From the NCBI RefSeq assembly GCF_001194135.2, contig NC_068989.1, forward strand, positions 80,976,375 through 81,040,374: a DNA stretch of 64,000 nucleotides, written 5' to 3'. The notes below the pieces were generated by a model. It had not been told where the DNA came from, made no database searches, and worked only from the letters and a program-made list of their open reading frames with translations. Positions 2,551 through 58,190 of the stretch are shown in pieces. Position 1 is the first letter of the stretch, and each line of letters begins with the position of its first letter. Source of the stretch: Octopus bimaculoides (Eukaryota). The position numbers and the translations under genes were made by a program.

Positions 2551-3389
2551 NNNNNNNNNNNNNNNNNNNNNNNNNNNNNNNNNNNNNNNNNNNNNNNNNN
2601 NNNNNNNNNNNNNNNNNNNNNNNNNNNNNNNNNNNNNNNNNNNNNNNNNNNNNNNNNNNNNNNNNNNNNNNNNNNNNNNNNNNNNNNNNNNNNNNNNNNN
2701 NNNNNNNNNNNNNNNNNNNNNNNNNNNNNNNNNNNNNNNNNNNNNNNNNNNNNNNNNNNNNNNNNNNNNNNNNNNNNNNNNNNNNNNNNNNNNNNNNNNN
2801 NNNNNNNNNNNNNNNNNNNNNNNNNNNNNNNNNNNNNNNNNNNNNNNNNNNNNNNNNNNNNNNNNNNNNNNNNNNNNNNNNNNNNNNNNNNNNNNNNNNN
2901 NNNNNNNNNNNNNNNNNNNNNNNNNNNNNNNNNNNNNNNNNNNNNNNNNNNNNNNNNNNNNNNNNNNNNNNNNNNNNNNNNNNNNNNNNNNNNNNNNNNN
3001 NNNNNNNNNNNNNNNNNNNNNNNNNNNNNNNNNNNNNNNNNNNNNNNNNNNNNNNNNNNNNNNNNNNNNNNNNNNNNNNNNNNNNNNNNNNNNNNNNNNN
3101 NNNNNNNNNNNNNNNNNNNNNNNNNNNNNNNNNNNNNAGTTAGAATAGAGACAGCTGATGAAGGGATATTCCAAGTGGCTTTCCGTTTTCCTATGTGTTC
3201 GTTCCGTTGTCTGTAGTTCATTGTTCTAACGTCCTGTACCCTGATATGCATATATATACACATGTAGATGTAAGTATGTACATATATGTGTGTATACATG
3301 TATATATATTCTTTGTATTATTACATTATTGAACGCACACGTCCTTTTTTGCAAGTAAGTCTACTTTATATATATATATATATACACAC

Positions 3390-4151: not shown

Positions 4152-4560
4152 GGCGCAGGAGTGGCTGTGTGGTAAGTAGCTTGCTTACCAACCACATGGT
4201 TCGGGTTCAGTCCCACTGCGTGGCACCTTGGGAAAGTGTCTTCTACTATAGCCTCGGGCCGACCAAAGCCTTGTGAGTGGATTTGGTAGACGGAAACTGA
4301 AAGAAGCCCGTTGTGTATATGTATATATATATGTATGTGTGTATATATGTTCGTGTGTCTGTGTTTGTCCCCCCAACATCGCTTGACAACCGATGCTGGT
4401 GTGTTTATGTCCCCGTAACTTAGTGGTTCGGCAAAAGAGACCGATAGAATAAGTACTACGCTTACAAAGAATAAGTCCAGGGGTCGATTTGCTCGACTAA
4501 AGGCAGTGCTCCAGCATGGCCGCAGTCAAATGACTGAAACAAGTAAAAGAGTAAAAGAGT
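4152..4560 (+). mobile_element. tRNA-derived SINE, family A, full length
   Basis: Head GGCGCAGGAGTGGCTGTGTGG...GGTTCAGTCCC, central gcaccttgggaaagtgtc block, internal (TA/TG)n, tail AAACAAGTAAAAGAGTAAAAGAGT. More than ten related copies in the window. Confidence 0.9.
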
Positions 4561-7339: not shown

Positions 7340-7705
7340 TGAAGTCATTGTCATGGCTGATGCCAGCGCCACCTGACTAGCACCTGTGCTGGTGGCACGC
7401 AAAAAGCACTATTTGAGCATGGTCATTGCCAGCGCCACCCAACCGGCTCCCATGCCAGTGGAACATAAAAGGCACCATTCAAGCGTAATCAATGCCAGTA
7501 CCACCTGACTGACCCTTGTGCCAGTGGCACGTAAAAAGCACTCACTACACTCTTGGAATGGCTGGCATTAGGAAGGGCATCCAGCTGTAGAAACCTTGCC
7601 AAATCAGATGGGAGCCTGGTACAGTCTTCTGGTTTGCCAGTCCTCAGACAAATCGTCCAACCCATGCCAACATGGAAAGCAGACGTTAAACGATGATGAT
7701 GATTA
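7340..7705 (+). mobile_element. Family B repeat with reiterated 5' module and (GAT)n tail
   Basis: Three ...tggcac(g)taaaaagcac modules, then the core and gttaaacgatgatgatgat. Confidence 0.85.
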
Positions 7706-9589: not shown

Positions 9590-9755
9590 CATCAGTCATT
9601 GGACTGCAGTTGTGCTGGGGCACTAACGCTAGTATACTCCGCAGGATGTGTAATGTAAGTGTATTGAAAGAAAAGCTTGACATAAGAGAAATTAGACACA
9701 ATGAGCAAGAGAGAAAACGGCACTGGTTTGGCCATGTGATGCAGATGGATGCCAA

Positions 9756-9798
<43 letters not shown>

Positions 9799-10240
9799 GT
9801 CATCATCATCATCATCATCATCGTCATCGTCATCATCATCATTATCATCATCATCATCATTTAATGTCTGCTTTCCTCGCTGGCATGGGTTGGACGATTT
9901 GACTGAGGACTGGTGAACTGGATGGCTACACCAGGCTCCAACTGATTTGGCAGTGTTTCTACAGCTGGATGCCCTTCCTAACGCCAACCACTCCAAGAGT
10001 GTAGTGGGTGCTTTTACGTGCCACTGGCATGAAGGCCAGTCAGGCGGTACTGGCAACGGCAACGGCTCCATAAAAAAAAAGTGCCAATCTCTCAAAGTAG
10101 ATGGAACATGTGGAAGTGAGAGACCCAGGAAGACATGGGACGAAGTACAGAAGGACAACCTCAAGACACTGAACCTTTCAAATGAAATGACAAAGGACTG
10201 AAATACATGATGCCTTCCTGTACTCAAGAAGACCCAAACT
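9590..10240 (+). mobile_element. RTE-clade LINE 3' fragment interrupted by an antisense SINE
   Basis: 9590-9756 reads ...RKRHWFGHVMQMDA. After the insert, 10071-10240 continues KKCQSLKVDGTCGSERPRKTWDEVQKDNLK. Confidence 0.8.
9757..10070 (-). mobile_element. Family B repeat, antisense, with an expanded (ATC)n tail of about 35 units
   Basis: Reverse complement of family B. The tail at 9757-9860 explains the poly-Asp, poly-Met and poly-Ile ORFs. Confidence 0.88.
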
Positions 10241-10609
10241 CCACAGTAGAAGTGTTAAGGTCACTCATTCTAGTAAAGAGGATTGGCCTACAAGAGTTCT
10301 GTGCTGGTGCCACATAAAAAGCATTCATTCCGGTGTCACATTAGAAGCAATCATCACATGTCAGATCATGCTACAAACTTCAACCATTCCTTCTAAGCAT
10401 TTTACTTCCTCACCCATTGTACTGCTCCCGCACTGCCCTAACCTTTTCCCAAACTGCTCACACTACCTCCAACTCTACTTGCACCATCTCCCACACTACT
10501 CACACCACCTTGCATTAGTTTCCTCCTCCTCCTCTTCCTATATCAACCTTTCTGTGTCACTCACTCCTTTACCTCTTTTCTTTTCTCATCTGCAATTTTA
10601 TTACCTTGG

Positions 10610-25199: not shown

Positions 25200-25267
25200 T
25201 CATTGCATGCCCTCGGGCTTTTTACCTCCGTGGAATTCCTCTATGCACAAGTGGCAACTCCAACTAC
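25200..25267 (-). CDS. DPF: DPF/d4 terminal coding exon (GSWSCHLCIEEFHGGKKPEGMQ*)
   Basis: Acceptor tttcgttacag|GT AGT TGG, phase 1. It completes PHD2 (PEGSWSCHLC). Stop TGA at 25202-25200 is followed by a second in-frame TGA. Confidence 0.96.
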
Positions 25268-25988: not shown

Positions 25989-26070
25989 CCTCAGGCGGTT
26001 CCGATAACTGAGGAGTCAAGCAATACATATGATAGCCTCGGTCACAGTCATCACAGAACAGAAGCTGTTC
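25989..26070 (-). CDS. DPF: DPF/d4 exon: PHD2 core ([28 protein letters not shown])
   Basis: Absent from the ORF track and read by hand. Acceptor ctccttttag|GAA CAG, donor GAG G|gtaata; 82 nt, phase 0 to phase 1. Contains the [16 protein letters not shown] motif. Confidence 0.97.
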
Positions 26071-28348: not shown

Positions 28349-28668
28349 ATCATCATCATCATCATCATCATCGTTTAACGTCCGCTTTCCATGCTAGCAT
28401 GGGTTGGACGATTTGACTGAGGACTGGTGCAACCGGATGGCTACACCAGGCTCCAATCTAATTTGGCAGAGTTTCTACAGCTGGATGCCCTTCCTAACGC
28501 CAACCACTCAGAGAGTGTAGTGGGTGCTTTTACGTGTCACCCGCATGAAAACGGCCACGCTCGAAATGGTGTCTTTTATGTGCCACCCGCACAAGAGCCA
28601 GTCCAGGGGCACTGGCAACGATCTCGCTCGAAAACCCTACAAGGCCAGTCAGGCGGTACTGGCAACGG
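28349..28668 (-). mobile_element. Family B repeat, antisense, little diverged, in the DPF intron 30861-26071
   Basis: atcatcatc...cgtttaacgtccgctttccatgctagcatgggttggacg...; nearly identical over long stretches to 9860-10070. Confidence 0.9.
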
Positions 28669-30861: not shown

Positions 30862-30974
30862 ATCATTATCGGATGTCCCACAGAGACCACAAGACTTGCA
30901 TTCAATACATTGCCAAGGATATTTCTTCACGGATATTATCATGTTTGGAGTAAACTGCAGGCAGGATGGATGCC
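30862..30974 (-). CDS. DPF: DPF/d4 exon: end of PHD1 and start of PHD2 ([38 protein letters not shown])
   Basis: Acceptor ttgctccag|GG CAT and donor GAT|gtaagc; 113 nt, phase 1 to phase 0. Contains the HPxCLQF...WQCIECKSC signature of the DPF double PHD. Confidence 0.97.
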
Positions 30975-32578: not shown

Positions 32579-32704
32579 CTGATCGTCCACAATCACTGCA
32601 GGATACTAGGCCTTCTGGCTGACGCGTCTTCTTGTTCTCTTGTGAGTCTCCGAGGCAGAAATCACAGTAATTATTTGGAGCCACTTTGCCATCAATAGAT
32701 TTTG
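32579..32704 (-). CDS. DPF: DPF/d4-family (BAF45-like) exon: start of PHD finger 1 ([43 protein letters not shown])
   Basis: Acceptor ctttcag|CA at 32704 and donor TCAG|gtaaag at 32579; 126 nt, phase 1 to phase 1. The peptide matches the DPF1/2/3 PHD1 signature [10 protein letters not shown]...PEELVSCxDCGRSG. Confidence 0.97.
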
Positions 32705-33107
32705 CTGAAAGATTAACAAAAACAAAAATAAAAAAACTAAATGCTTGAAGACAGTGGGATGTAACTGAAGAAAGCACAACACTACACAACATGGCAAACT
32801 AGAATCCCATCTATGTTAACCCTGCCACCATTACACCCAGGCTGCAAGCAAGAAAGCAGTTACAGAACAGATAAGTTTAGAATTATTGTGCTATCAATTT
32901 CCTTGCTTAAAAAATTCATCCAGAAATTATCAATTATAACTGCTTTTAATGATAAATTCAAATATGTATCTGCATATTGTTTATATAAAGGTAAGATATT
33001 GTTCACCAGCACTTATCCAAACTAACAAAAAATTTGAAATAGCTTCGCACCTTTTCAAAACAGCCTCATTAATGAACATTTTGGGCCCCCATTGGGAAAG
33101 TAGATTT

Positions 33108-33301
33108 TCAGTTTTTCTTGGGCCGCCCTCTCTTTTGGTGGTGATTTTCAATGCTTTTATGCTTCTGCAGTTGATACTGAGAGGCAAAGCATCGGCCACA
33201 CTCTTCGCCTGAGCCCACGAGGAATTTGCAAATAAACAGAGAGGGTGAGTCTGCGTGTCTCGTGTGAAGGCTGCCACCATGCATCCACACCGTGTGTCTT
33301 C
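33108..33301 (-). CDS. Candidate alternative last exon of DPF encoding a C2H2-type zinc finger and AT-hook (GRHTVWMHGGSLHTRHADSPSLFICKFLVGSGEECGRCFASQYQLQKHKSIENHHQKRGRPKKN*)
   Basis: Acceptor gtcttcttgccgtttcatatttccctcttctactgacag|GA, phase 1. Pattern F-x-C-x9-C-x3-F-x5-L-x2-H-x5-H followed by KRGRPKK. GC-richer island in AT-rich flanks. No good donor seen before the TGA. Confidence 0.65.
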
Positions 33302-36039
33302 CTGTCAGTAGAAGAGGGAAATATGAAACGGCAAGAAGACGTTCAGATTCTAGGTTGGTGGCCCCGGCTCAGTTTACATACAACAAGATTTGTAGACTTA
33401 TGAATTAGAGAGGAAACAAAAAATAACAAAACAAAACAAAAATAAAATAAACATCTTTTTTTTTATATTTATTTTAATAGTTTAAAATAAAATTAAGAAA
33501 AATGTGTGGATTGTTTTATTTTAAATATTGAAACTGAAGAAAAAGTTATAAAGAAAGACAAAGAAAAATTACAAAAATTTGTATACTTTAATAATAGATC
33601 GATAGAAATATGATATTTCCAATTACTATAATTGCCAATTTTTTTCTGTTATTAAAATATTTCTTTTGGAATCACTTTTATCTTTCTCTCTCTCTCTTTC
33701 TCTCTTTTCAAAAGCATTATATTTCGTTCATATAAGAACAGTGCTATAGTATATTATTGTTTTCAGTAGTATTAAAAGCAGAAATATGCATTATTAAATA
33801 TTTTTGTTTATCAGGATGACTTTTTTAAAATTTTATTTAAAATGACCAAAACTTTATTTTTAAAATAGTCTTTAAAATTGATTTAATTTATATTAATATT
33901 TTTCTTCAATTTTTTAATTTTTTATTTATGAATCTTCTGTCTTAAATTAATATTATGAAAGCAGGTTGTAAAAAAATGTAAGAAAAAATATTGAATTATA
34001 AAAGAAAACAAAGAAAACAAAGGGGAGGCAGGTATCTAAGAAAGAATATTACCAAAGACATTCAATACTAGACAGGGGGGAATAGTTGGAATAAGAATTT
34101 GGAATGAAAGAAGCTGGTAAGCAGGTTCTGACTACTCTACTTGCAGCCTGGTGAAGTATCTATGGTTTACTTTTAGCCTAGGGTTTCTGATGGTACACTT
34201 AGGTAAACATATTGTAATCAATACATCACAATAGCCACTCACCAAATAAAAGATGAGGTGACAGCACAAGAGAAATGTGTGAGACTTACAAGGAAGATTT
34301 TAATGATACAAGAGATTTTACTAACTAAATCATTAACCATAAACTTGACATGCACAGATATTTTATATGCTTAGATAAATATAATAGTATCCCAGCTTGT
34401 TACTTACAATAGCCAGACTATACTGCTAGCTTTTACTATTGCACTAATATGAGACATTATAAGTTAACAGCCAGTAAATATTAAAGAGACTGGTGAAGTG
34501 ACATATACCAGTTTTTAAGGTAAAATCAAAATGACGTGTGCACACATACACGTTGATGTATGTGTAATAAAAGAGTAAAAGACAACTGAAGGGTGAGGAA
34601 GATGGATTAGTACAAGATATTATATGCAGAAAGAGAGGAGGAGATAGTTTAAATTTGATGAACACTGCAGTTAGTTAGGCATTGTTACACAAATACATGC
34701 ACAAGAATATGAATTTAATCACCCAACAAACAACGGATTTTAGATATAAAATCTTTAAAAGATATGTTATACAAAACTTTCTCAAGGTTTAAAAGATGGC
34801 AACCATATATATATATAATATATATATGTCATACAGCAAAATAAAAAAAAATATATTAAGAAGAAAAAAAACATTGTAAAAGCACTGAATGCATATAAGC
34901 AAAATTGATATTTCAACTTAATAAAGCTTTAGCTTTACAAAGAAGAAAATCTCAAAAGAAATATCGAAGATGAAAGAGATATTCTGCAAGGATTACTTAC
35001 TGTCATGTCTGTATACATTCTAACACTTCAAAAGCAAAATGATGTCTATTCTTACAAGAAACTTCTATAAATATTAAATAGGTGTTTAAAAAAAAATGAA
35101 TAAACCCTTACAAAATATGTAAGTAGTTTTGATTTACATACTCTATTGATATAGGGAATTAAATTTGAAGTGAAATACTAAAAGGAAGAATTTTACTACC
35201 AACTGACAAATTTTAACTGAATACCTCAAATGCTGAATTTCTTTCAGTTATTACACACTTTGACTCTAAACATAAGTCAATTGGCTACTATTTCTCATCA
35301 GGAATCAGAGAATTGGCAGTCATTAGAGCACTGGGTATAGTGTCTTATGGTATTTGTACTGGCTCTATGTACTCCGAGTTCAAACTCTGCTGAGGTAAAC
35401 TTTGCCTTTCACTGTGGATAAAAACTGTATAAGTCCAGAGTAAGAGTAATGGATTAGTGCAATTGACAAGACATAATACTAAACAGGATGCTTTGCTTCT
35501 GTTTCTATGTGTTCTGCAAATAACACTTGTAATGACACTAGTATCAAAGCTGTTGTCAATCCTTGCATTGGTAGGATGTAGAGGGGAAACTTACAGGCAC
35601 ATCTACTATTTAAACATAAATATTGCATCTTAGAGAGGAACATTACAGATGTTCTGGACTATGATTTATATCTGAGTAAAAAATACTCATTTTGGAAAAT
35701 TAATCCTCTTGAAAATATTTAGTTTCTCAAAAGATGTTTACAACAGCAACAATCTGAGACAGAGACAAATCAAACAGCTAATAGATGAAAGAAACTCTCT
35801 AAAAATATTTATCAAATGGTGACAGTTCCAAAGGATTAGATTATAGAAAACATCTAGAGTACAGCGAATTTTTTTTTAGAAAATAAATATATTCTTAAAT
35901 ATTGCATTTAGTTATTTGAAAAATAAAGGAAATGTGTTGAAAAAATATACTAAAAGCATTACATGTACTAACTTTATTTTTACAGCTATTTAATGAGGAA
36001 TTAAATATTTAACCCTTTTGTTATCACATTTTTAGCTTT

Positions 36040-36415
36040 TGCAATTCTATATTTCTGAGATGAGGAATTTATATTATGTACACTATTTACATTAGTCGGA
36101 TTGATGTCCTCATTCTGATTGTTGCTTTCACTACATTTTGGCTGTTGTGCACTCCAACCTTCTTCAGATGTCATAAAAAAAAAAAAATCAACTGTAGGGA
36201 AAACAAATGTCATGAAACACAGAGAACAGAATGAAAACAATGTATCCTTGTGGATCAAATAAAGGGTTAGGGTTGAAATTCCAATACAACAGCTTGACAC
36301 AAGACACCTGAAAAAGGCTGGAGCGTGGACAACTGCCAGAATGGAATGAACGTATCAATCATGATGAAAACACCAGTCCGAGTAATATAAATAGTATACA
36401 TAATACATTACTTTT
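36040..36415. mobile_element. Inverted pair of Penelope-like terminal-repeat fragments, each with a decayed hammerhead-like core
   Basis: 36040-36172 (-) and 36303-36415 (+) are homologous. Cores CTGAAGA-AGGTTG-loop-CAGCC-AAAA (-) and CTGAAAA-AGGCTG-loop-CTGCC-AGAA (+), followed by similar ccga...aat(g/a)taaatagt(g/a)tacataat segments. Confidence 0.5.
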
Positions 36416-42923: not shown

Positions 42924-42971
42924 CGACAGGTGTATGATTGAAAGTATTATAGCTGTCCATAGAAATACCCA
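42924..42971 (-). CDS. DPF: Probable 48-nt internal DPF exon in the linker upstream of PHD1 (x-GISMDSYNTFNHTPV-G/A)
   Basis: On the minus strand: ctaac branch-like motif, then pyrimidine tract ctttttcttcttaactttctgcatcatcaccag, a 48-nt exon open in phase 1, and donor CG|gtgagt. Phase 1/1 splices in frame to both 32704 and 33301. No homology support for this linker peptide. Confidence 0.7.
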
Positions 42972-44593: not shown

Positions 44594-45897
44594 GGCATTA
44601 CTGATATAGGATGGAACTAAAAAGAAACTTGGCTCTCCTCAACTCTACAGCTTTTCTCTCAATACCTCCTCTAGTATAATATCTCTTGTTGAATGTCCTA
44701 AATAAGCATTTCAGCCCAAATAGGTAACATGTTAATACAGTGTCACTACTGCTTAGAAAAATATGAGTTTTGCATATTCATATCTGTTCACAGATAAATG
44801 AACTAACACAATGAGGATTAAATATTATTTGCCAATCATATTCAATCAATTAGGGAAAAAAATTTCATTATATGCCTGCAGACACGGAATAAGTTGTACC
44901 TTCATAAAAAATATCATTGCCACATTAAACACACTGCTAGCTACAAGATTTTTTTTTCCTTTAGATCGTACAAGTATTTAAAAATATATTTATAAAAAAA
45001 AAAAAAAAAAAAAAACAATCTCCATTTCTGAAATTTTCTAAAGTCAATATATAAGAAACAAATTTTTTTTTCCTTGAATTTTAATTGCTAGAAAGAAAAA
45101 AAATCATTAACAGAAAAATAAGCTTTTTTATTTGTTTATGAATTTGTGTAAGATTCCTGATGTGAAACCATGTGTTGAAACAGATATTGTTCTATTTCGG
45201 GATGATGACCATCCCAAAATATAACTTTTTCTCTTTTGATAAAACATTANNNNNNNNNNCATTACACTGTTGGAATTCAACAAATGTAAGAACCATTCTG
45301 AAAGAAATTATATGAATGTGAGCATGTTTGTGTGTGTGTGTGTGTGTATATATATGTACACACAGATATATTTATATATGTACACACTAAGCATCAGACT
45401 AATATATTCACTGTGGATGTTCATTTGACTTTTGTTGTTTTGTTTTTGAATTTGCTATTTGTTACTGATTTGCATATATATATATATATATGCACACACA
45501 CACACACACACACATACATGCATATCCAGATATATACACATACATGTAAACAAGCAGAGTATGGCCGAATGGTTAAGAGATTTGCTTTGCAACCACATGG
45601 CTCCAGGTTCAATCCCACTTCATGCATCTTGGGCAAATGTCATTATCTATAGCCTTGGGTTGACCCATACCTTGTGAATAAAATTAGGTATAGAAGCCCT
45701 TCAGATGGATGTGTCTGGAAATTCAAAGGTACAACTATGTCATACACTGTACCACTGCTAGGGAATTACATTTACAGTTCAGCAACTTACATGCCAATTA
45801 CATGGGCAAGTAATTCAGTTCATTGAATAACCGAATGAATCCTCATCATCAAACTAACAGCTCCTCCCCTCCCTTCCTCTGTGTGTGTGTGTATACA

Positions 45898-46390
45898 CAG
45901 GGTGGCCTAAAAGTAGGTTTACAGTTATTCAACTATCTCTTTCGCATTCATATATTAACAGTTTAGATCTTAATTATCGAAAAAATATGAAACCATTATT
46001 CAGCAAGATGGGCAGCATCAAATGGCCACCATGTTCACCTGACACGACACCAATGGATTTCTTTTTTTTGGGTGTTGTAAAGAACAAGGTTTATGAGAAT
46101 AATCCCAAAACAGTAAATGAATTAAAAGATTACATTTCTGACGTGTTCACTGAAATTGATGGAGATCAGAATTTGTGTCACACTGTGTGTCAGAGTGTTC
46201 TGAAGAGGTTTGAAGAATGTTACAATGTTGAAAGAGGACATTTTGAGCATCTGAGAGATTAAACATCATCTGTTTAAGATGTGCATAAAACAATATGATT
46301 GTAAGATAGAAATTTAAATGTAATAAAATGTTTTAAAAGAAATTTAAAGTGTCTACGTGATAACTATAAACCTACCTTTGGGCCACCTTA
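45898..46390 (+). mobile_element. Non-autonomous Tc1/mariner-superfamily element with transposase C-terminal remnant
   Basis: About 30-bp TIRs CAGGGTGGCCTAAAAGTAGGTTTACAGTTAT / ATAACTATAAACCTACCTTTGGGCCACCTT in TA context. The ORF contains WPPCSPDTTPMDFFFLGVVKNKVY (compare WPPRSPDLxPxDFFLWG). Confidence 0.9.
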
Positions 46391-47371
46391 TATATATATA
46401 TATATATATNNNNNNNNNNNNNNNNNNNNNNNNNNNNNNNNNNNNNNNNNNNNNNNNNNNNNNNNNNNNNNNNNNNNNNNNNNNNNNNNNNNNNNNNNNN
46501 NNNNNNNNNNNNNNNNNNNNNNNNNNNNNNNNNNNNNNNNNNNNNNNNNNNNNNNNNNNNNNNNNNNNNNNNNNNNNNNNNNNNNNNNNNNNNNNNNNNN
46601 NNNNNNNNNNNNNNNNNNNNNNNNNNNNNNNNNNNNNNNNNNNNNNNNNNNNNNNNNNNNNNNNNNNNNNNNNNNNNNNNNNNNNNNNNNNNNNNNNNNN
46701 NNNNNNNNNNNNNNNNNNNNNNNNNNNNNNNNNNNNNNNNNNNNNNNNNNNNNNNNNNNNNNNNNNNNNNNNNNNNNNNNNNNNNNNNNNNNNNNNNNNN
46801 NNNNNNNNNNNNNNNNNNNNNNNNNNNNNNNNNNNNNNNNNNNNNNNNNNNNNNNNNNNNNNNNNNNNNNNNNNNNNNNNNNNNNNNNNNNNNNNNNNNN
46901 NNNNNNNNNNNNNNNNNNNNNNNNNNNNNNNNNNNNNNNNNNNNNNNNNNNNNNNNNNNNNNNNNNNNNNNNNNNNNNNNNNNNNNNNNNNNNNNNNNNN
47001 NNNNNNNNNNNNNNNNNNNNNNNNNNNNNNNNNNNNNNNNNNNNNNNNNNNNNNNNNNNNNNNNNNNNNNNNNNNNNNNNNNNNNNNNNNNNNNNNNNNN
47101 NNNNNNNNNNNNNNNNNNNNNNNNNNNNNNNNNNNNNNNNNNNNNNNNNNNNNNNNNNNNNNNNNNNNNNNNNNNNNNNNNNNNNNNNNNNNNNNNNNNN
47201 NNNNNNNNNNNNNNNNNNNNNNNNNNNNNNNNNNNNNNNNNNNNNNNNNNNNNNNNNNNNNNNNNNNNNNNNNNNNNNNNNNNNNNNNNNNNNNNNNNNN
47301 NNNNNNNNNNNNNNNNNNNNNNNNNNNNNNNNNNNNNNNNNNNNNNNNNNNNNNNNNNNNNAGGGATTGCA

Positions 47372-47907
47372 GCCTGGAGAGTTGGTTGGCCAGATGTTAG
47401 GGGTAATGTGGTCACAGAAATTGTCTGACATCCATGACTGGGCTCTCATGCTTGTGTGGCTTGGTGCAGAGTTCTGTTGCCAGACATAGGGTCTTCCAGC
47501 AGCCACCCTCTTGACCAAGGGCAGCACTACCTTCTCCAGGCACTTGATGTAGGCCTCCGTGTTGAATCTGAGACCATGTGGGAAGATGGCAGTATAACAC
47601 CACCATCACTAGTGATCATTCCAAACACCATATCGACTGGATGTTTGATTTTTATCACTCTCGGTACATGTCCTCAGATTGATATTCAAACATTCTGAAA
47701 TGTCTGTATTGGAGCTTCCAGTGTGACTACCAAGCAGTACAGCATGTTGTTTCCAAATTTCTGTCAGAGTGAACTGCATCATGGTGCTGTTTTTCTCACA
47801 GACGGTGCCCAACTGACCCTACTATACTGCGTAGTCAACAAAATCAAAAACAAACAATGCGCAAAATTATAAATATTGAATGGCAACAATTTATCCATCA
47901 AACCCTG
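47372..47907 (-). mobile_element. Deleted, frameshifted Tc1-like element (runs into gap)
   Basis: 5' TIR TA|CAGGGTTTGATGGATAAATTG at 47907. A DDE-type remnant MVFGMITSDGGV.../...VKRVAAGRPYVWQQNSAPSHTS...WPTNSPGCNP is joined to an N-terminal remnant. Confidence 0.88.
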
Positions 47908-54870: not shown

Positions 54871-55654
54871 TCACTATGGTGATATGCCATCCTGCAAACC
54901 CGTCCAACATAATCCTGCATGAAAAATGGACATTAAACACTGAGTATGTGTGCGTGTGTGTATGTATATACATACATACATGTGTAATTACACACACATT
55001 TACAAATTATCAACATTAATTTTTTTCCCCTTCCTCTACTCCAATTGTGTAGGATATTTGATTCTATATCAATAAAATATCATTATGCTAATATTAGTTT
55101 CCTTAAGCAAATATAAAGGAAGATTTAACTAAACAAAATTGCATCATGCAGTCTTAAATTTAAAAGTAATTGATCTTTTTAAAAAAATTTCTTTAATTGT
55201 GATGATCTTTAATAAGGTTTCAATATTCTGAAGAGAAATAATATGGTCAAAATACAATATAATTTAATCAATACGGTTATCAATAAAAATAGTTGCTGTC
55301 AGATCCACAACTGCTATTTCAAATTAATTATCTCGATCTCTGTTTACCAAACAGTGGGTTCATGAAGTGAACTACTGGTTTATTAAATGGATTAAGATGA
55401 AGATAATTGATAAAAAAAAACAGCAGATAACATTTGAAGGAAAATATAAAAAAAGATAGTAAAGAAATATCAAATCCAGATGAGAGCATAACACAGCAAA
55501 ATTGTTAATAAGAAAAACAAAGAAATAATTACTTTAGTAGAGTAATTGTTCAACTAAAATGCAATTTTAGATGAATAAATTTATTATAAACTTTCGTACT
55601 TGCTAAAATGTTTAGGAAAAGGAGATTATTAAATATGACAAACTTAGCACCATT

Positions 55655-55945
55655 CAAGTGTGGTCGATACCAGTGCTGCCTGACTGGCACCCATGCTGGT
55701 GGCATGTAAAAAGCACCATTCAAGCATGGTCAATGTCAGTGCCACCTGACTGGCACCCATGCTGGTGGTACGTAAAAAGCACCCACTACACTCTTGGAGT
55801 TGTTGGTGTTAGGAAGGGCATCCAGCTGTAGAAACCTTGCCAGATCAGACTGGAGCCTGATGCAGCCTCCTCGCTTGCCAGTCTTCAGTCAAACTGTCCA
55901 ACCCATGCCAGCATGGAAGGCAGACGTTAAACGACGATGATGACA
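55655..55945 (+). mobile_element. Family B repeat with duplicated 5' module
   Basis: ctgactggcacccatgctggtgg occurs twice, then the core and gttaaacgacgatgatga. Confidence 0.87.
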
Positions 55946-56770: not shown

Positions 56771-58190
56771 ATATATATATATATATATATATATANNNNN
56801 NNNNNNNNNNNNNNNNNNNNNNNNNNNNNNNNNNNNNNNNNNNNNNNNNNNNNNNNNNNNNNNNNNNNNNNNNNNNNNNNNTATATATATGTACATGTGT
56901 AAAATATGTTTTATATATATATAGAGAGAGACACACACACACACACATATATATACATACATACATACACATCTAATAAAAAAAATAAAGAACCTTCACA
57001 TGTACTTTTACAATCAACCTTAACAGTTCTTTTTTTTTTTTTTAGTTGGCAAGAATGTTTTTTGCATAGTTAATCCACTCTATGAAACACTAAAGGGAAA
57101 TATATAAAAGTGATATTCTTAATTCAAGTCTATAATTTATACAAATTATGTAATTATTTTGTGTAGATACTTATAAAGTCTACTTTTCTACACAATTTTT
57201 TAGTGCAGTCTTTAACTCTTTAGAAAAATGCTACCATTGGCAAAATGAGACCGATGGAAGTATGGCAAAAAATGGCGAGGTCAGATCTTAAGATGTTGGT
57301 TTCACAGATGCTGTGACATAGGATGAAGATGGGCAACAATATGGAACACTAGTGGCCTGTCCAACCAATTCTAGCTTTAAAAATAGATATCAAAATACAG
57401 TCTCTCCACTCTAGTTTCAAATTATTTTACTTTTTGCAATGATTTAAATAGGACAAATGTTTACAATATATTTCCTCTTGGTGTTGAAATCATTATATAC
57501 TATTCATTACTTGATTATTTCATAAAAATGTTAACAAGTTTCTTTCTACTTTTAATGTGATATTCATACAAAGTCAGAGCTGGTCAAATTTATAGGGTTT
57601 GAGACACCTTGGTTGGTAAGATAAATGTTTCATATTTTATCTTCAACTATTTGCAAGTCCAAGATATCTAACCTTTAAAACAACCAGTTGTAAACAGGTG
57701 AAATGGATAGATAAAACTGACCACTGCAAAACTATGTAGAATTAAAGTGCATTCTAACAATTTACAGTGATGTGTTCAAGCCATTCAATGGGCCTAGATA
57801 AGATAACCCCCCCAGCACTGAACTCTGGACACACATCTTCATTTTTATTGAAGGGGGTGGGGTTCTAACCCACCATTAGATTCAGGTTGCATTGAATGGT
57901 TTGAGCAAAACAGCCTAACTTGCATGAAATTCATTCGAAACAAACATCCAGCATCAAGTGGCTATCTTATTTAACAACCAGAGATTTTACAATACTGTTA
58001 ATATTTGCTTTGCATTATTCTTAGCTACAAGAAACTGAGTTATATATTCAGAACTAGACAGGTTCTTAGCTGTAGATACAAAACTTTTTCTTGTTTGCAC
58101 AAGATATTTGACATCACAAAACCTAAGTGCACTGTGATATGAAATACTTTCTTTTCTTCCAGATAATCATAATAAACTATATACTCTAAA

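Follow-up and report, generated by a model that had tools for sequence, protein, structure and literature searches.

A probable transposon remnant ending in a zinc finger and an AT-hook-like tail within an intron of a DPF (BAF45) gene

Introduction

Does an open frame that looks like a terminal exon, set in an intron of a DPF (BAF45) gene, belong to that gene, or did it arrive with a mobile element? The 64-kb stretch of DNA analysed here (the window; coordinates are window positions unless another contig is named) raises this question upstream of its first PHD exon, where a frame opens behind a candidate 3' splice site, encodes a C2H2-like finger and an AT-hook-like tail, and closes with its own stop codon. 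The initial annotation proposed an isoform switch in which this frame would replace the double PHD of the protein, with the caveat that the exon could be the exapted end of a transposon ORF. Our analyses lead us to conclude, with a probability of roughly 0.65, that 33301–33108 is the 3'-terminal remnant of a cut-and-paste transposon and most likely a passenger in the DPF intron.

The host gene

The C-terminal part of a DPF gene, with the tandem PHD fingers (D4 domain), is encoded on the minus strand by four exons that are 64–100% identical to DPF proteins. These exons and a candidate exon upstream of them are as follows.

42924–42971, minus strand: candidate upstream exon of 48 nt, reading ..GISMDSYNTFNHTPV + G, phase 1 at both ends, proposed from splice signals alone
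32579–32704, minus strand: DPF exon for the first half of PHD1, (A) plus 41 residues, with a phase-1 acceptor; 77–81% identity to human DPF2 and an oyster protein by tblastn
30862–30974, minus strand: DPF exon for the second half of PHD1 and the start of PHD2, by homology
25989–26070, minus strand: DPF PHD2 exon, by homology
25200–25267, minus strand: coding part of the last DPF exon, ending ...SWSCHLCIEEFHGGKKPEGMQ-TGA, by homology

Joined together, the C-terminal 144 residues reach 89% identity to DPF proteins of molluscs and brachiopods, with an oyster protein as the best match (89%). Exons for the canonical Requiem (2/3) domain and the Krueppel-type C2H2 finger were not detected by tblastn between 43 and 64 kb of the window, so the DPF gene starts beyond 64 kb; the Requiem and C2H2 exons presumably lie outside the window on its upstream side, and more than 21 kb of intron would precede the 48-nt candidate exon.

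The 48-nt segment has good splice signals at its borders (cag/TG on the 5' side and G/GTGAGT on the 3' side), and no homology support for it was found in protein homology searches or by tblastn. The initial annotation had stated that this exon splices in frame to either of two acceptors, and that the PHD1 acceptor lies about 600 nt downstream of the candidate terminal exon in the same phase 1. Both statements hold: the predicted joins read TPV-G-RHTVW into 33301 and TPV-A-KSIDGK into the PHD1 exon, and the PHD1 exon starts, in phase 1, at 32704, 597 nt downstream of 33301. Since splicing to the phase-1 PHD1 acceptor requires an exon that ends in phase 1, the phase fit of 33301 is independent of the 48-nt exon.

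Anatomy of the candidate terminal exon

The transposon-like remnant, found 0.4 kb upstream of the PHD1 exon in sense orientation, comprises the following features.

33302–33336, minus strand: candidate 3' splice site, a tract rich in pyrimidines that ends ctgacag and reads ...SYFPLLLT in frame
33108–33301, minus strand: candidate terminal exon, a 64-codon phase-1 frame plus TGA, the putative tail of a transposase-like ORF
33279–33296, minus strand: H-x4-H, orphan His pair of family finger 1, both His invariant in the alignment with relatives
33141–33230, minus strand: family finger 2, C-x9-C-x12-H-x5-H, C2H2-like with a long first knuckle
33114–33134, minus strand: basic tail KRGRPKK with an AT-hook-like RGRP core, directly before Asn-TGA
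32945–32950, minus strand: ATTAAA hexamer, 158 nt past the stop

On the minus strand the letters before 33301 read ...cttcttgccgtttcatatttccctcttctactgacag, and the phase-1 frame that follows, (G)RHTVWMHGGSLHTRHADSPSLFICKFLVGSGEECGRCFASQYQLQKHKSIENHHQKRGRPKKN, is terminated by TGA at 33110–33108. Re-reading of the sequence bore out the anatomy given in the initial annotation, namely the 33301 acceptor, the 64-codon phase-1 frame, the finger spacing, the KRGRPKKN-TGA end and the ATTAAA. Within QKRGRPKKN the putative AT-hook core R-G-R-P is flanked by basic residues. The GC content is 0.42–0.58 at about 33050–33400, compared with 0.08–0.24 in the surrounding intron, and a self-comparison of the window revealed no overlap between the frame and the window's many SINE-like repeats. 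A second GC-rich island (0.44–0.50 compared with 0.2–0.28 in the intron) is present on the minus strand at 32750–32850, between the ATTAAA and the PHD1 acceptor.

Chance expectation and splice-site strength

The length of the frame alone is not notable, given that the six frames of the window contain 160 open frames of at least 64 codons and composition-matched shuffles contain 69. The motifs within it are far rarer: the finger pattern C-x3-F-x5-L-x2-H-x3-5-H occurs once in the window, where shuffles predict 0–0.015 occurrences, and the AT-hook pattern [RK]GRP[RK] occurs twice, with 0.09 expected from shuffles. The acceptor at 33301 has pyrimidines at 14 of the 16 positions from -5 to -20. Across the 10.2-kb intron, just 8 YAG acceptors reach 13 or more pyrimidines out of 16, 33301 among them, and it is the only one of the 8 that precedes a phase-1 frame of more than 23 codons. 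The poly(A) signal to which the initial annotation pointed, ATTAAA at 32950–32945, is indeed present but not significant; the same intron strand carries 32 poly(A) hexamers (17 ATTAAA and 15 AATAAA), a frequency that makes this one uninformative by itself.

Relatives of the peptide

An exhaustive HMMER search with the 64-aa peptide against 1.84 billion representatives returned two specific relatives, P0125 and P0135, each matched over a single stretch; the other matches were generic multi-finger proteins. P0125 (E=1e-7, 49% identity to the window peptide) ends in ...YQLQKHKEIQGHHQPQGRPKKN-stop, and its C-terminus, ...YRCQFVLDGKPCGKSFHMMYQLQKHKEIQGHHQPQGRPKKN-stop, follows the same ...YQLQKHK..HHQ..GRPKKN-stop pattern as the window. 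P0135 (E=4e-5) ends in ...VVCKFVTESGVVCGKKFATQYYLNKHKSEEEHFSRVHKKAKV-stop. The QGRPKKN-stop of P0125 occupies the same position as the window tail, and the tail of P0135 is basic without GRP. The window and its relatives agree in having a long Cys spacer (x8-9), H-x5-H spacing and a His pair ahead of the finger, and their stop codons fall at the same place. The initial annotation had singled out an unusually long Cys spacer; the C-x9-C spacing is real, but a spacer of x8-9 is a trait of the family and not peculiar to this copy. A word-indexed search with the three aligned sequences (the peptide and both relatives) yielded P0125 and P0135 and nothing further, and no further relatives were found in a scan of JGI metagenomes.

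P0135 is found on two short contigs, where it follows an upstream exon and a 51-nt intron. The spliced product aligns over 118 aa (E=1e-7) with the ORF of the transposon that carries P0125 (L001, described below), and this alignment identifies the tail as native to that transposon protein family. The conserved C-terminal domain spans about 120 residues and consists of ...HYxTFL..., finger 1 (C-x3/4-C-x12-H-x4-H), finger 2 (C-x8/9-C-x12-H-x5-H), the basic tail and the stop. When the L001 ORF was compared with the window by tblastn, the match at 33269–33111 (E=2e-11, 47% identity) covered the last ~53 aa alone. The Cys pair of finger 1 is missing upstream, where in the alignment the window has ERLLAVSYF and the relatives carry C-x3/4-C; ERLLAVSYFPLLLTG of the window aligns to RCQ-x-GC-x-YVF of the relatives. 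Finger 2, by comparison, retains every ligand and core residue that is invariant in the three-sequence alignment (C25, F27, G32, C35, G36, F39, Y43, L45, H48 and H54).

Finger 2 departs from the standard C2H2 model at its first knuckle. Its score against Pfam zf-C2H2 (PF00096) is 20.3 bits relative to a gathering cut-off of 25.2, with profile positions 5–22 aligned. The C2H2 core is present (C35-x12-H48-x5-H54, with F39 and L45), but the canonical C-x2-4-C first knuckle is not, as the spacing is C-x9-C and a Gly stands where the first Cys would be expected. AF2 modeling with the three-sequence alignment predicts, with pLDDT 79–85 for residues 21–55, a beta-hairpin and a helix at 42–52, with disorder at both ends; the top Foldseek matches of this model are C2H2 fingers, all with E>0.8 and none significant. 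The spacing and core (F/Y, G-x-x-C-G-K-x-F, L, H) are the same as in the extended-first-knuckle C2H2 fingers (C-x8-10-C-x12-H-x3-5-H) of the arrays P0122–P0145, and the hairpin and helix are also predicted in the window finger. Long-knuckle fingers are thus a regular variant in these sequences. Unlike the fingers of the tandem long-knuckle arrays, the window finger is single and C-terminal, has a basic tail after it and scores below the Pfam threshold. Three of the array proteins, P0122, P0130 and P0133, are metagenome proteins with tandem long-knuckle C2H2 fingers (C-x8-10-C) and a C-terminal domain with the motifs [IV]E[CI]DExxH[DK]...[IV]R[FY]NPD.

The transposon carrying the closest relative

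P0125 is encoded on a 207-kb metagenome contig (ENA ERZ25072854 contig ctg59176_43x_l, hereafter L001) as the last ORF of a same-strand, frameshifted ORF chain of ~640 aa at L001 8277–10204. The chain lies within an element of ~2.96 kb (L001 7478–10434) that is bounded by 47-nt terminal inverted repeats (TIRs; 7477–7523 and 10389–10435, 87% complementary, start GGGGCCGTC) and has a TTA target-site duplication (TSD) at both ends. A paralogous empty site, uninterrupted and with 98% and 92% identity to the flanks of the element, is located at L001 12184–12248. The filled site together with the empty site is classic proof of cut-and-paste insertion in L001. Reverse-transcriptase and pogo fragments are neighbors of P0125, and no DPF or PHD similarity was found within 10 kb on either side of it. 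A comparison of L001 with the window found no repeats common to the two.

The L001 ORFs matched no family in Pfam, NCBIfam or the PDB, and the DDE-like motifs in them are a by-eye observation. Because no family is matched, it is the TIRs, the TSD and the empty site that justify the label "transposase". PIF/Harbinger-like cut-and-paste transposons have a 3-bp TTA/TAA target duplication and GGG... termini. The L001 element resembles them in its TTA TSD, which conforms to TWA, its GGG... termini, its 47-nt TIRs, its size of ~3 kb and its paralogous empty site; it differs in that its ORFs have no match to Pfam DDE_Tnp_4 at E<=1 and in that no Myb-like second ORF was seen. The element may represent a transposon family that is uncatalogued in the libraries searched, and this family is noteworthy for its combination of a TTA duplication, GGGG... 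ends and a Pfam-less protein that closes in two unusual fingers.

Another repeat is present on the same contig in two diverged copies (L001 10535–11539 and 12416–12982, 74% identity over 99 nt), which encode ...PGD[VI]xHPxF...FDVSVRNxLxPSY...AAEAGExxKD... with no Pfam match; the pair is bracketed by 68-nt inverted repeats of 96% identity at L001 10539–10606 and 12892–12959.

What the window keeps of the element

DNA similarity between the window and L001 is concentrated in the frame, where none of 500 shuffles reaches the observed score. The corresponding counts are 21 of 500 for the 3' non-coding part and 53 of 500, which is not significant, upstream of the acceptor. One further feature of the 3' part may be related to the ends of the element.

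32990–33035, minus strand: possible 3' TIR remnant, with the inner part AAATTTTTTGTTAGTTTGGATAA at 33035–33013

The sequence AAATTTTTTGTTAGTTTGGATAA agrees with the inner L001 TIR at 22 of 23 positions, and the outer TIR is dissimilar. This 23-mer lies 75 nt past the stop and is the top-scoring site of the window, although by a score of 36 compared with 35 elsewhere (empirical p ~0.01–0.04), and the match, being marginal, is suggestive only of a TIR remnant. A 5' TIR was not found in the window, nor was a second copy of the frame in its 64 kb. Other pieces of the L001 protein were not found in the window, 33.3–43 kb included (best tblastx E 0.14–1.3).

Two more complete structures were considered and rejected. 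A nested intact transposon or gene upstream was set aside given that no further L001 protein piece occurs in 33.3–43 kb, and so was a short element with an internal deletion and both TIRs, given that no inverted repeat pairs 33,340–33,400 with 32,950–33,110.

Origin of the fragment

We propose that a DNA transposon inserted in sense orientation into the DPF intron and that its 5' part has since been lost. The open frame would be the last 55–65 codons of the transposase-like protein of the element, of which the window would keep half of finger 1, a complete finger 2 and the RGRP tail with its native TGA, and perhaps also the inner part of the 3' TIR. In the transposon, the finger and the basic/AT-hook tail plausibly help the protein to hold the AT-rich ends of the element. 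For the DPF gene, the fragment is most likely a passenger that the mRNA does not regularly include, and it might at most serve as a young or cryptic alternative terminal exon. Given the homology to P0125, which extends to the same stop, and the TIR/TSD-bounded element that contains this relative, the finger with its long Cys spacer, the AT-hook and the TGA are, by homology, features inherited from a transposase. The same-stop homology to the ORF of such an element, together with the truncation of the two-finger domain, lends support to the caveat of an exapted transposon ORF end given in the initial annotation.

Several observations count against this reading. The frame is intact and all finger 2 ligands are kept, and the upstream flank has no detectable similarity to the element; so sharp a contrast between the frame and the flank immediately ahead of the acceptor is the pattern that selection on an exon would produce. 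In addition, the strong acceptor, the phase, the orientation and the downstream ATTAAA permit use as a terminal exon. On the same side of the balance stand the marginal score of the TIR-like match, the lack of repeats common to L001 and the window, the failure of the L001 ORFs to match a known family and the limited reach of the protein searches.

A different source of the finger would be the host genome, the frame being a decayed fragment of a host tandem C2H2 gene, with a KZNF-like finger that has lost its first Cys. The partial match to Pfam zf-C2H2 (positions 5–22, 20.3 compared with 25.2 bits, Gly for the first Cys) speaks for such decay, and EECGRCFASQYQLQKHK resembles the generic finger consensus. 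In view of the HMMER relatives and their alignment we consider this source very unlikely: the specific relatives share the Cys at x8-9, the H-x5-H, the preceding His pair and an identical C-terminal end with its stop, long-knuckle fingers are a regular variant, neither a linker nor a neighboring finger is present, and the relative P0125 resides inside a TIR/TSD-bounded transposon. The direction of transfer could also be reversed, with the frame as an original DPF exon that the transposon family took up by transduplication. Transposons can capture host exons, and the DPF gene already encodes a C2H2 finger upstream, but the tail terminates 118 aa that are conserved in two unrelated members of the transposon protein family, the DPF copy is the truncated one, and no DPF homologue with such a tail occurs among 281 DPF matches or 1.84 billion representatives, all of which renders this direction highly improbable. 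As to whether frame and motifs arose by chance in AT-rich intron sequence, frames of at least 64 codons are common in the window (160), as are poly(A) hexamers, but the single occurrence of a finger pattern expected at most 0.015 times, peptide homologues found among 1.84 billion library proteins at E=1e-7, and DNA similarity to L001 that beats 500 of 500 shuffles refute a chance origin, to which we attach next to no probability.

Possible use as a terminal exon

If the fragment is of transposon origin, it could nevertheless have been recruited, in which case the transposon tail would have become an alternative last exon by exonisation and, in some DPF transcripts, finger 2 with the AT-hook would replace the double PHD. 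Much of the locus is compatible with such a host-transposase fusion. The fragment points the same way as the gene and precedes the PHD1 exon by 0.4 kb; its acceptor is strong and has the phase needed for splicing in place of PHD1; the frame is intact with all finger 2 ligands kept, next to an unrecognisable flank upstream of the acceptor; an ATTAAA follows 158 nt past the stop; and the finger is predicted by AF2 to fold (pLDDT 79–85). There are also precedents, as the capture of transposase DNA-binding domains by alternative splicing is recurrent in tetrapods (bioRxiv 10.1101/2020.05.07.082677) and vertebrate D4-less DPF isoforms that arise via alternative last exons are known (PMC11678306). 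Against recruitment stands the origin of the exon-like features, all of which come from the transposon; if the insertion is young, its intact state calls for no selection. The boundary splits finger 1 and looks accidental, the 48-nt upstream exon is a candidate from splice signals only, searches for the junction or the peptide found no protein evidence, and Kuvaeva et al. list no D4-lacking isoform for molluscs (PMC11678306). We therefore regard the fusion as unlikely and, on present evidence, the isoform switch as less likely than a passive transposon remnant. The broader claim that a mollusc (probably cephalopod) BAF45/DPF protein captured a transposon finger and AT-hook, and so swapped histone-tail reading for AT-rich DNA binding, seems to us unlikely as well.

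The protein searches differ in what they can be expected to reveal. A word-indexed homology search with the 79-aa junction peptide, which has limited reach, gave no candidates, and HMMER found no DPF-linked relative of the peptide among the 1.84 billion representatives, a library that may fold such an isoform into its canonical cluster. In a word-indexed search with the 144-aa DPF query, the 120 matches listed were all of at most 251 aa, and short DPF isoforms were among them but not full-length ones. This suggests that the word-indexed search returns proteins only up to ~1.75x the query length, and because of this ceiling its negatives are weak and full-length isoforms are probably invisible to it. 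A homology search with the PHD region had no same-species protein among its matches.

A fusion, were it true, would yield a BAF45 variant that lacks the reading of acylated H3 and has a small DNA-binding module instead, and it would represent a lophotrochozoan transposase capture, outside vertebrates, that affects a core chromatin-remodeller subunit. The subunit concerned would be one whose PHD-less isoforms matter in vertebrate heart and muscle, and both the insertion and the parental isoform would still be visible. On present evidence, the locus is an ordinary intronic transposon remnant and a good exon mimic, and it serves as a warning that a mobile element can deliver an intact finger together with an AT-hook and a stop codon wholesale.

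Comparison with known systems

At least 94 captures that produced host-transposase fusions by alternative splicing have been described in tetrapods (bioRxiv 10.1101/2020.05.07.082677). The window locus resembles the fusions KRABINER, SETMAR and PGBD3-CSB (Cosby et al.) in that a late intron of a host regulatory gene contains, in sense orientation, a transposon coding piece with a usable acceptor, a putative DNA-binding module and its own stop. It differs from them in four respects. The fusions of Cosby et al. are fusion genes, whereas a chimeric transcript of the window locus is hypothetical; the window holds only the last ~60 residues of the transposon protein and not the main N-terminal DNA-binding domain; its acceptor lies inside the former ORF and not just upstream of it; and the host is a lophotrochozoan, whereas that survey covered tetrapods only.

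DPF isoforms without the D4 domain occur in other lineages, and the survey of Kuvaeva et al. (2024) lists none for molluscs (PMC11678306). In vertebrate DPF3a the branch point is inside PHD1 and the tail is conserved, disordered and not a finger, and the invertebrate D4-less cases listed arise by exon skipping or frameshift (PMC11678306). The candidate exon would be similar to DPF3a and DPF3a-like isoforms in that it would likewise replace the double PHD via an alternative last exon of a d4-family gene; it differs from DPF3a in that the replacement is transposon-derived and a candidate only. The fragment is best read as an intronic DNA-transposon piece of a family that the libraries searched do not recognise.

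Other features of the window

The window contains traces of further mobile elements. The same DPF intron carries MITE-like inverted repeats of 81 nt (36072–36152 and 36325–36405, 79% complementary, 172 nt apart). A reverse-transcriptase fragment on the plus strand (2294–2550, Pfam RVT_1 E=2.8e-8) runs into the assembly gap 2551–3137. On either side of another gap (46410–47361), the segments 45885–46262 (plus strand) and 47362–47527 (minus strand) have by eye the look of the C-terminus of a mariner-type transposase, with the ORF motifs ...SPDTTPMDFF... and ...QQNSAPSHTS... and no Pfam match at E<=0.01. SINE-like families of 200–400 bp are present in many copies with 72–92% identity and account for 91 self-hits in the window, including pairs such as 4156–4490 and 16906–16543, 9835–10033 and 28349–28549, and 7405–7702 and 55646–55943.

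Twelve runs of N (1311–1572 ... 56796–56881; 3,473 nt in total) interrupt the window and are mostly flanked by (TA)n or (TGTA)n microsatellites; with a gapped short-read draft assembly of this kind, small structural details near the gaps are unreliable. A long trinucleotide microsatellite at 9700–9860 reads as poly-Ser on one strand and as poly-Asp on the other.
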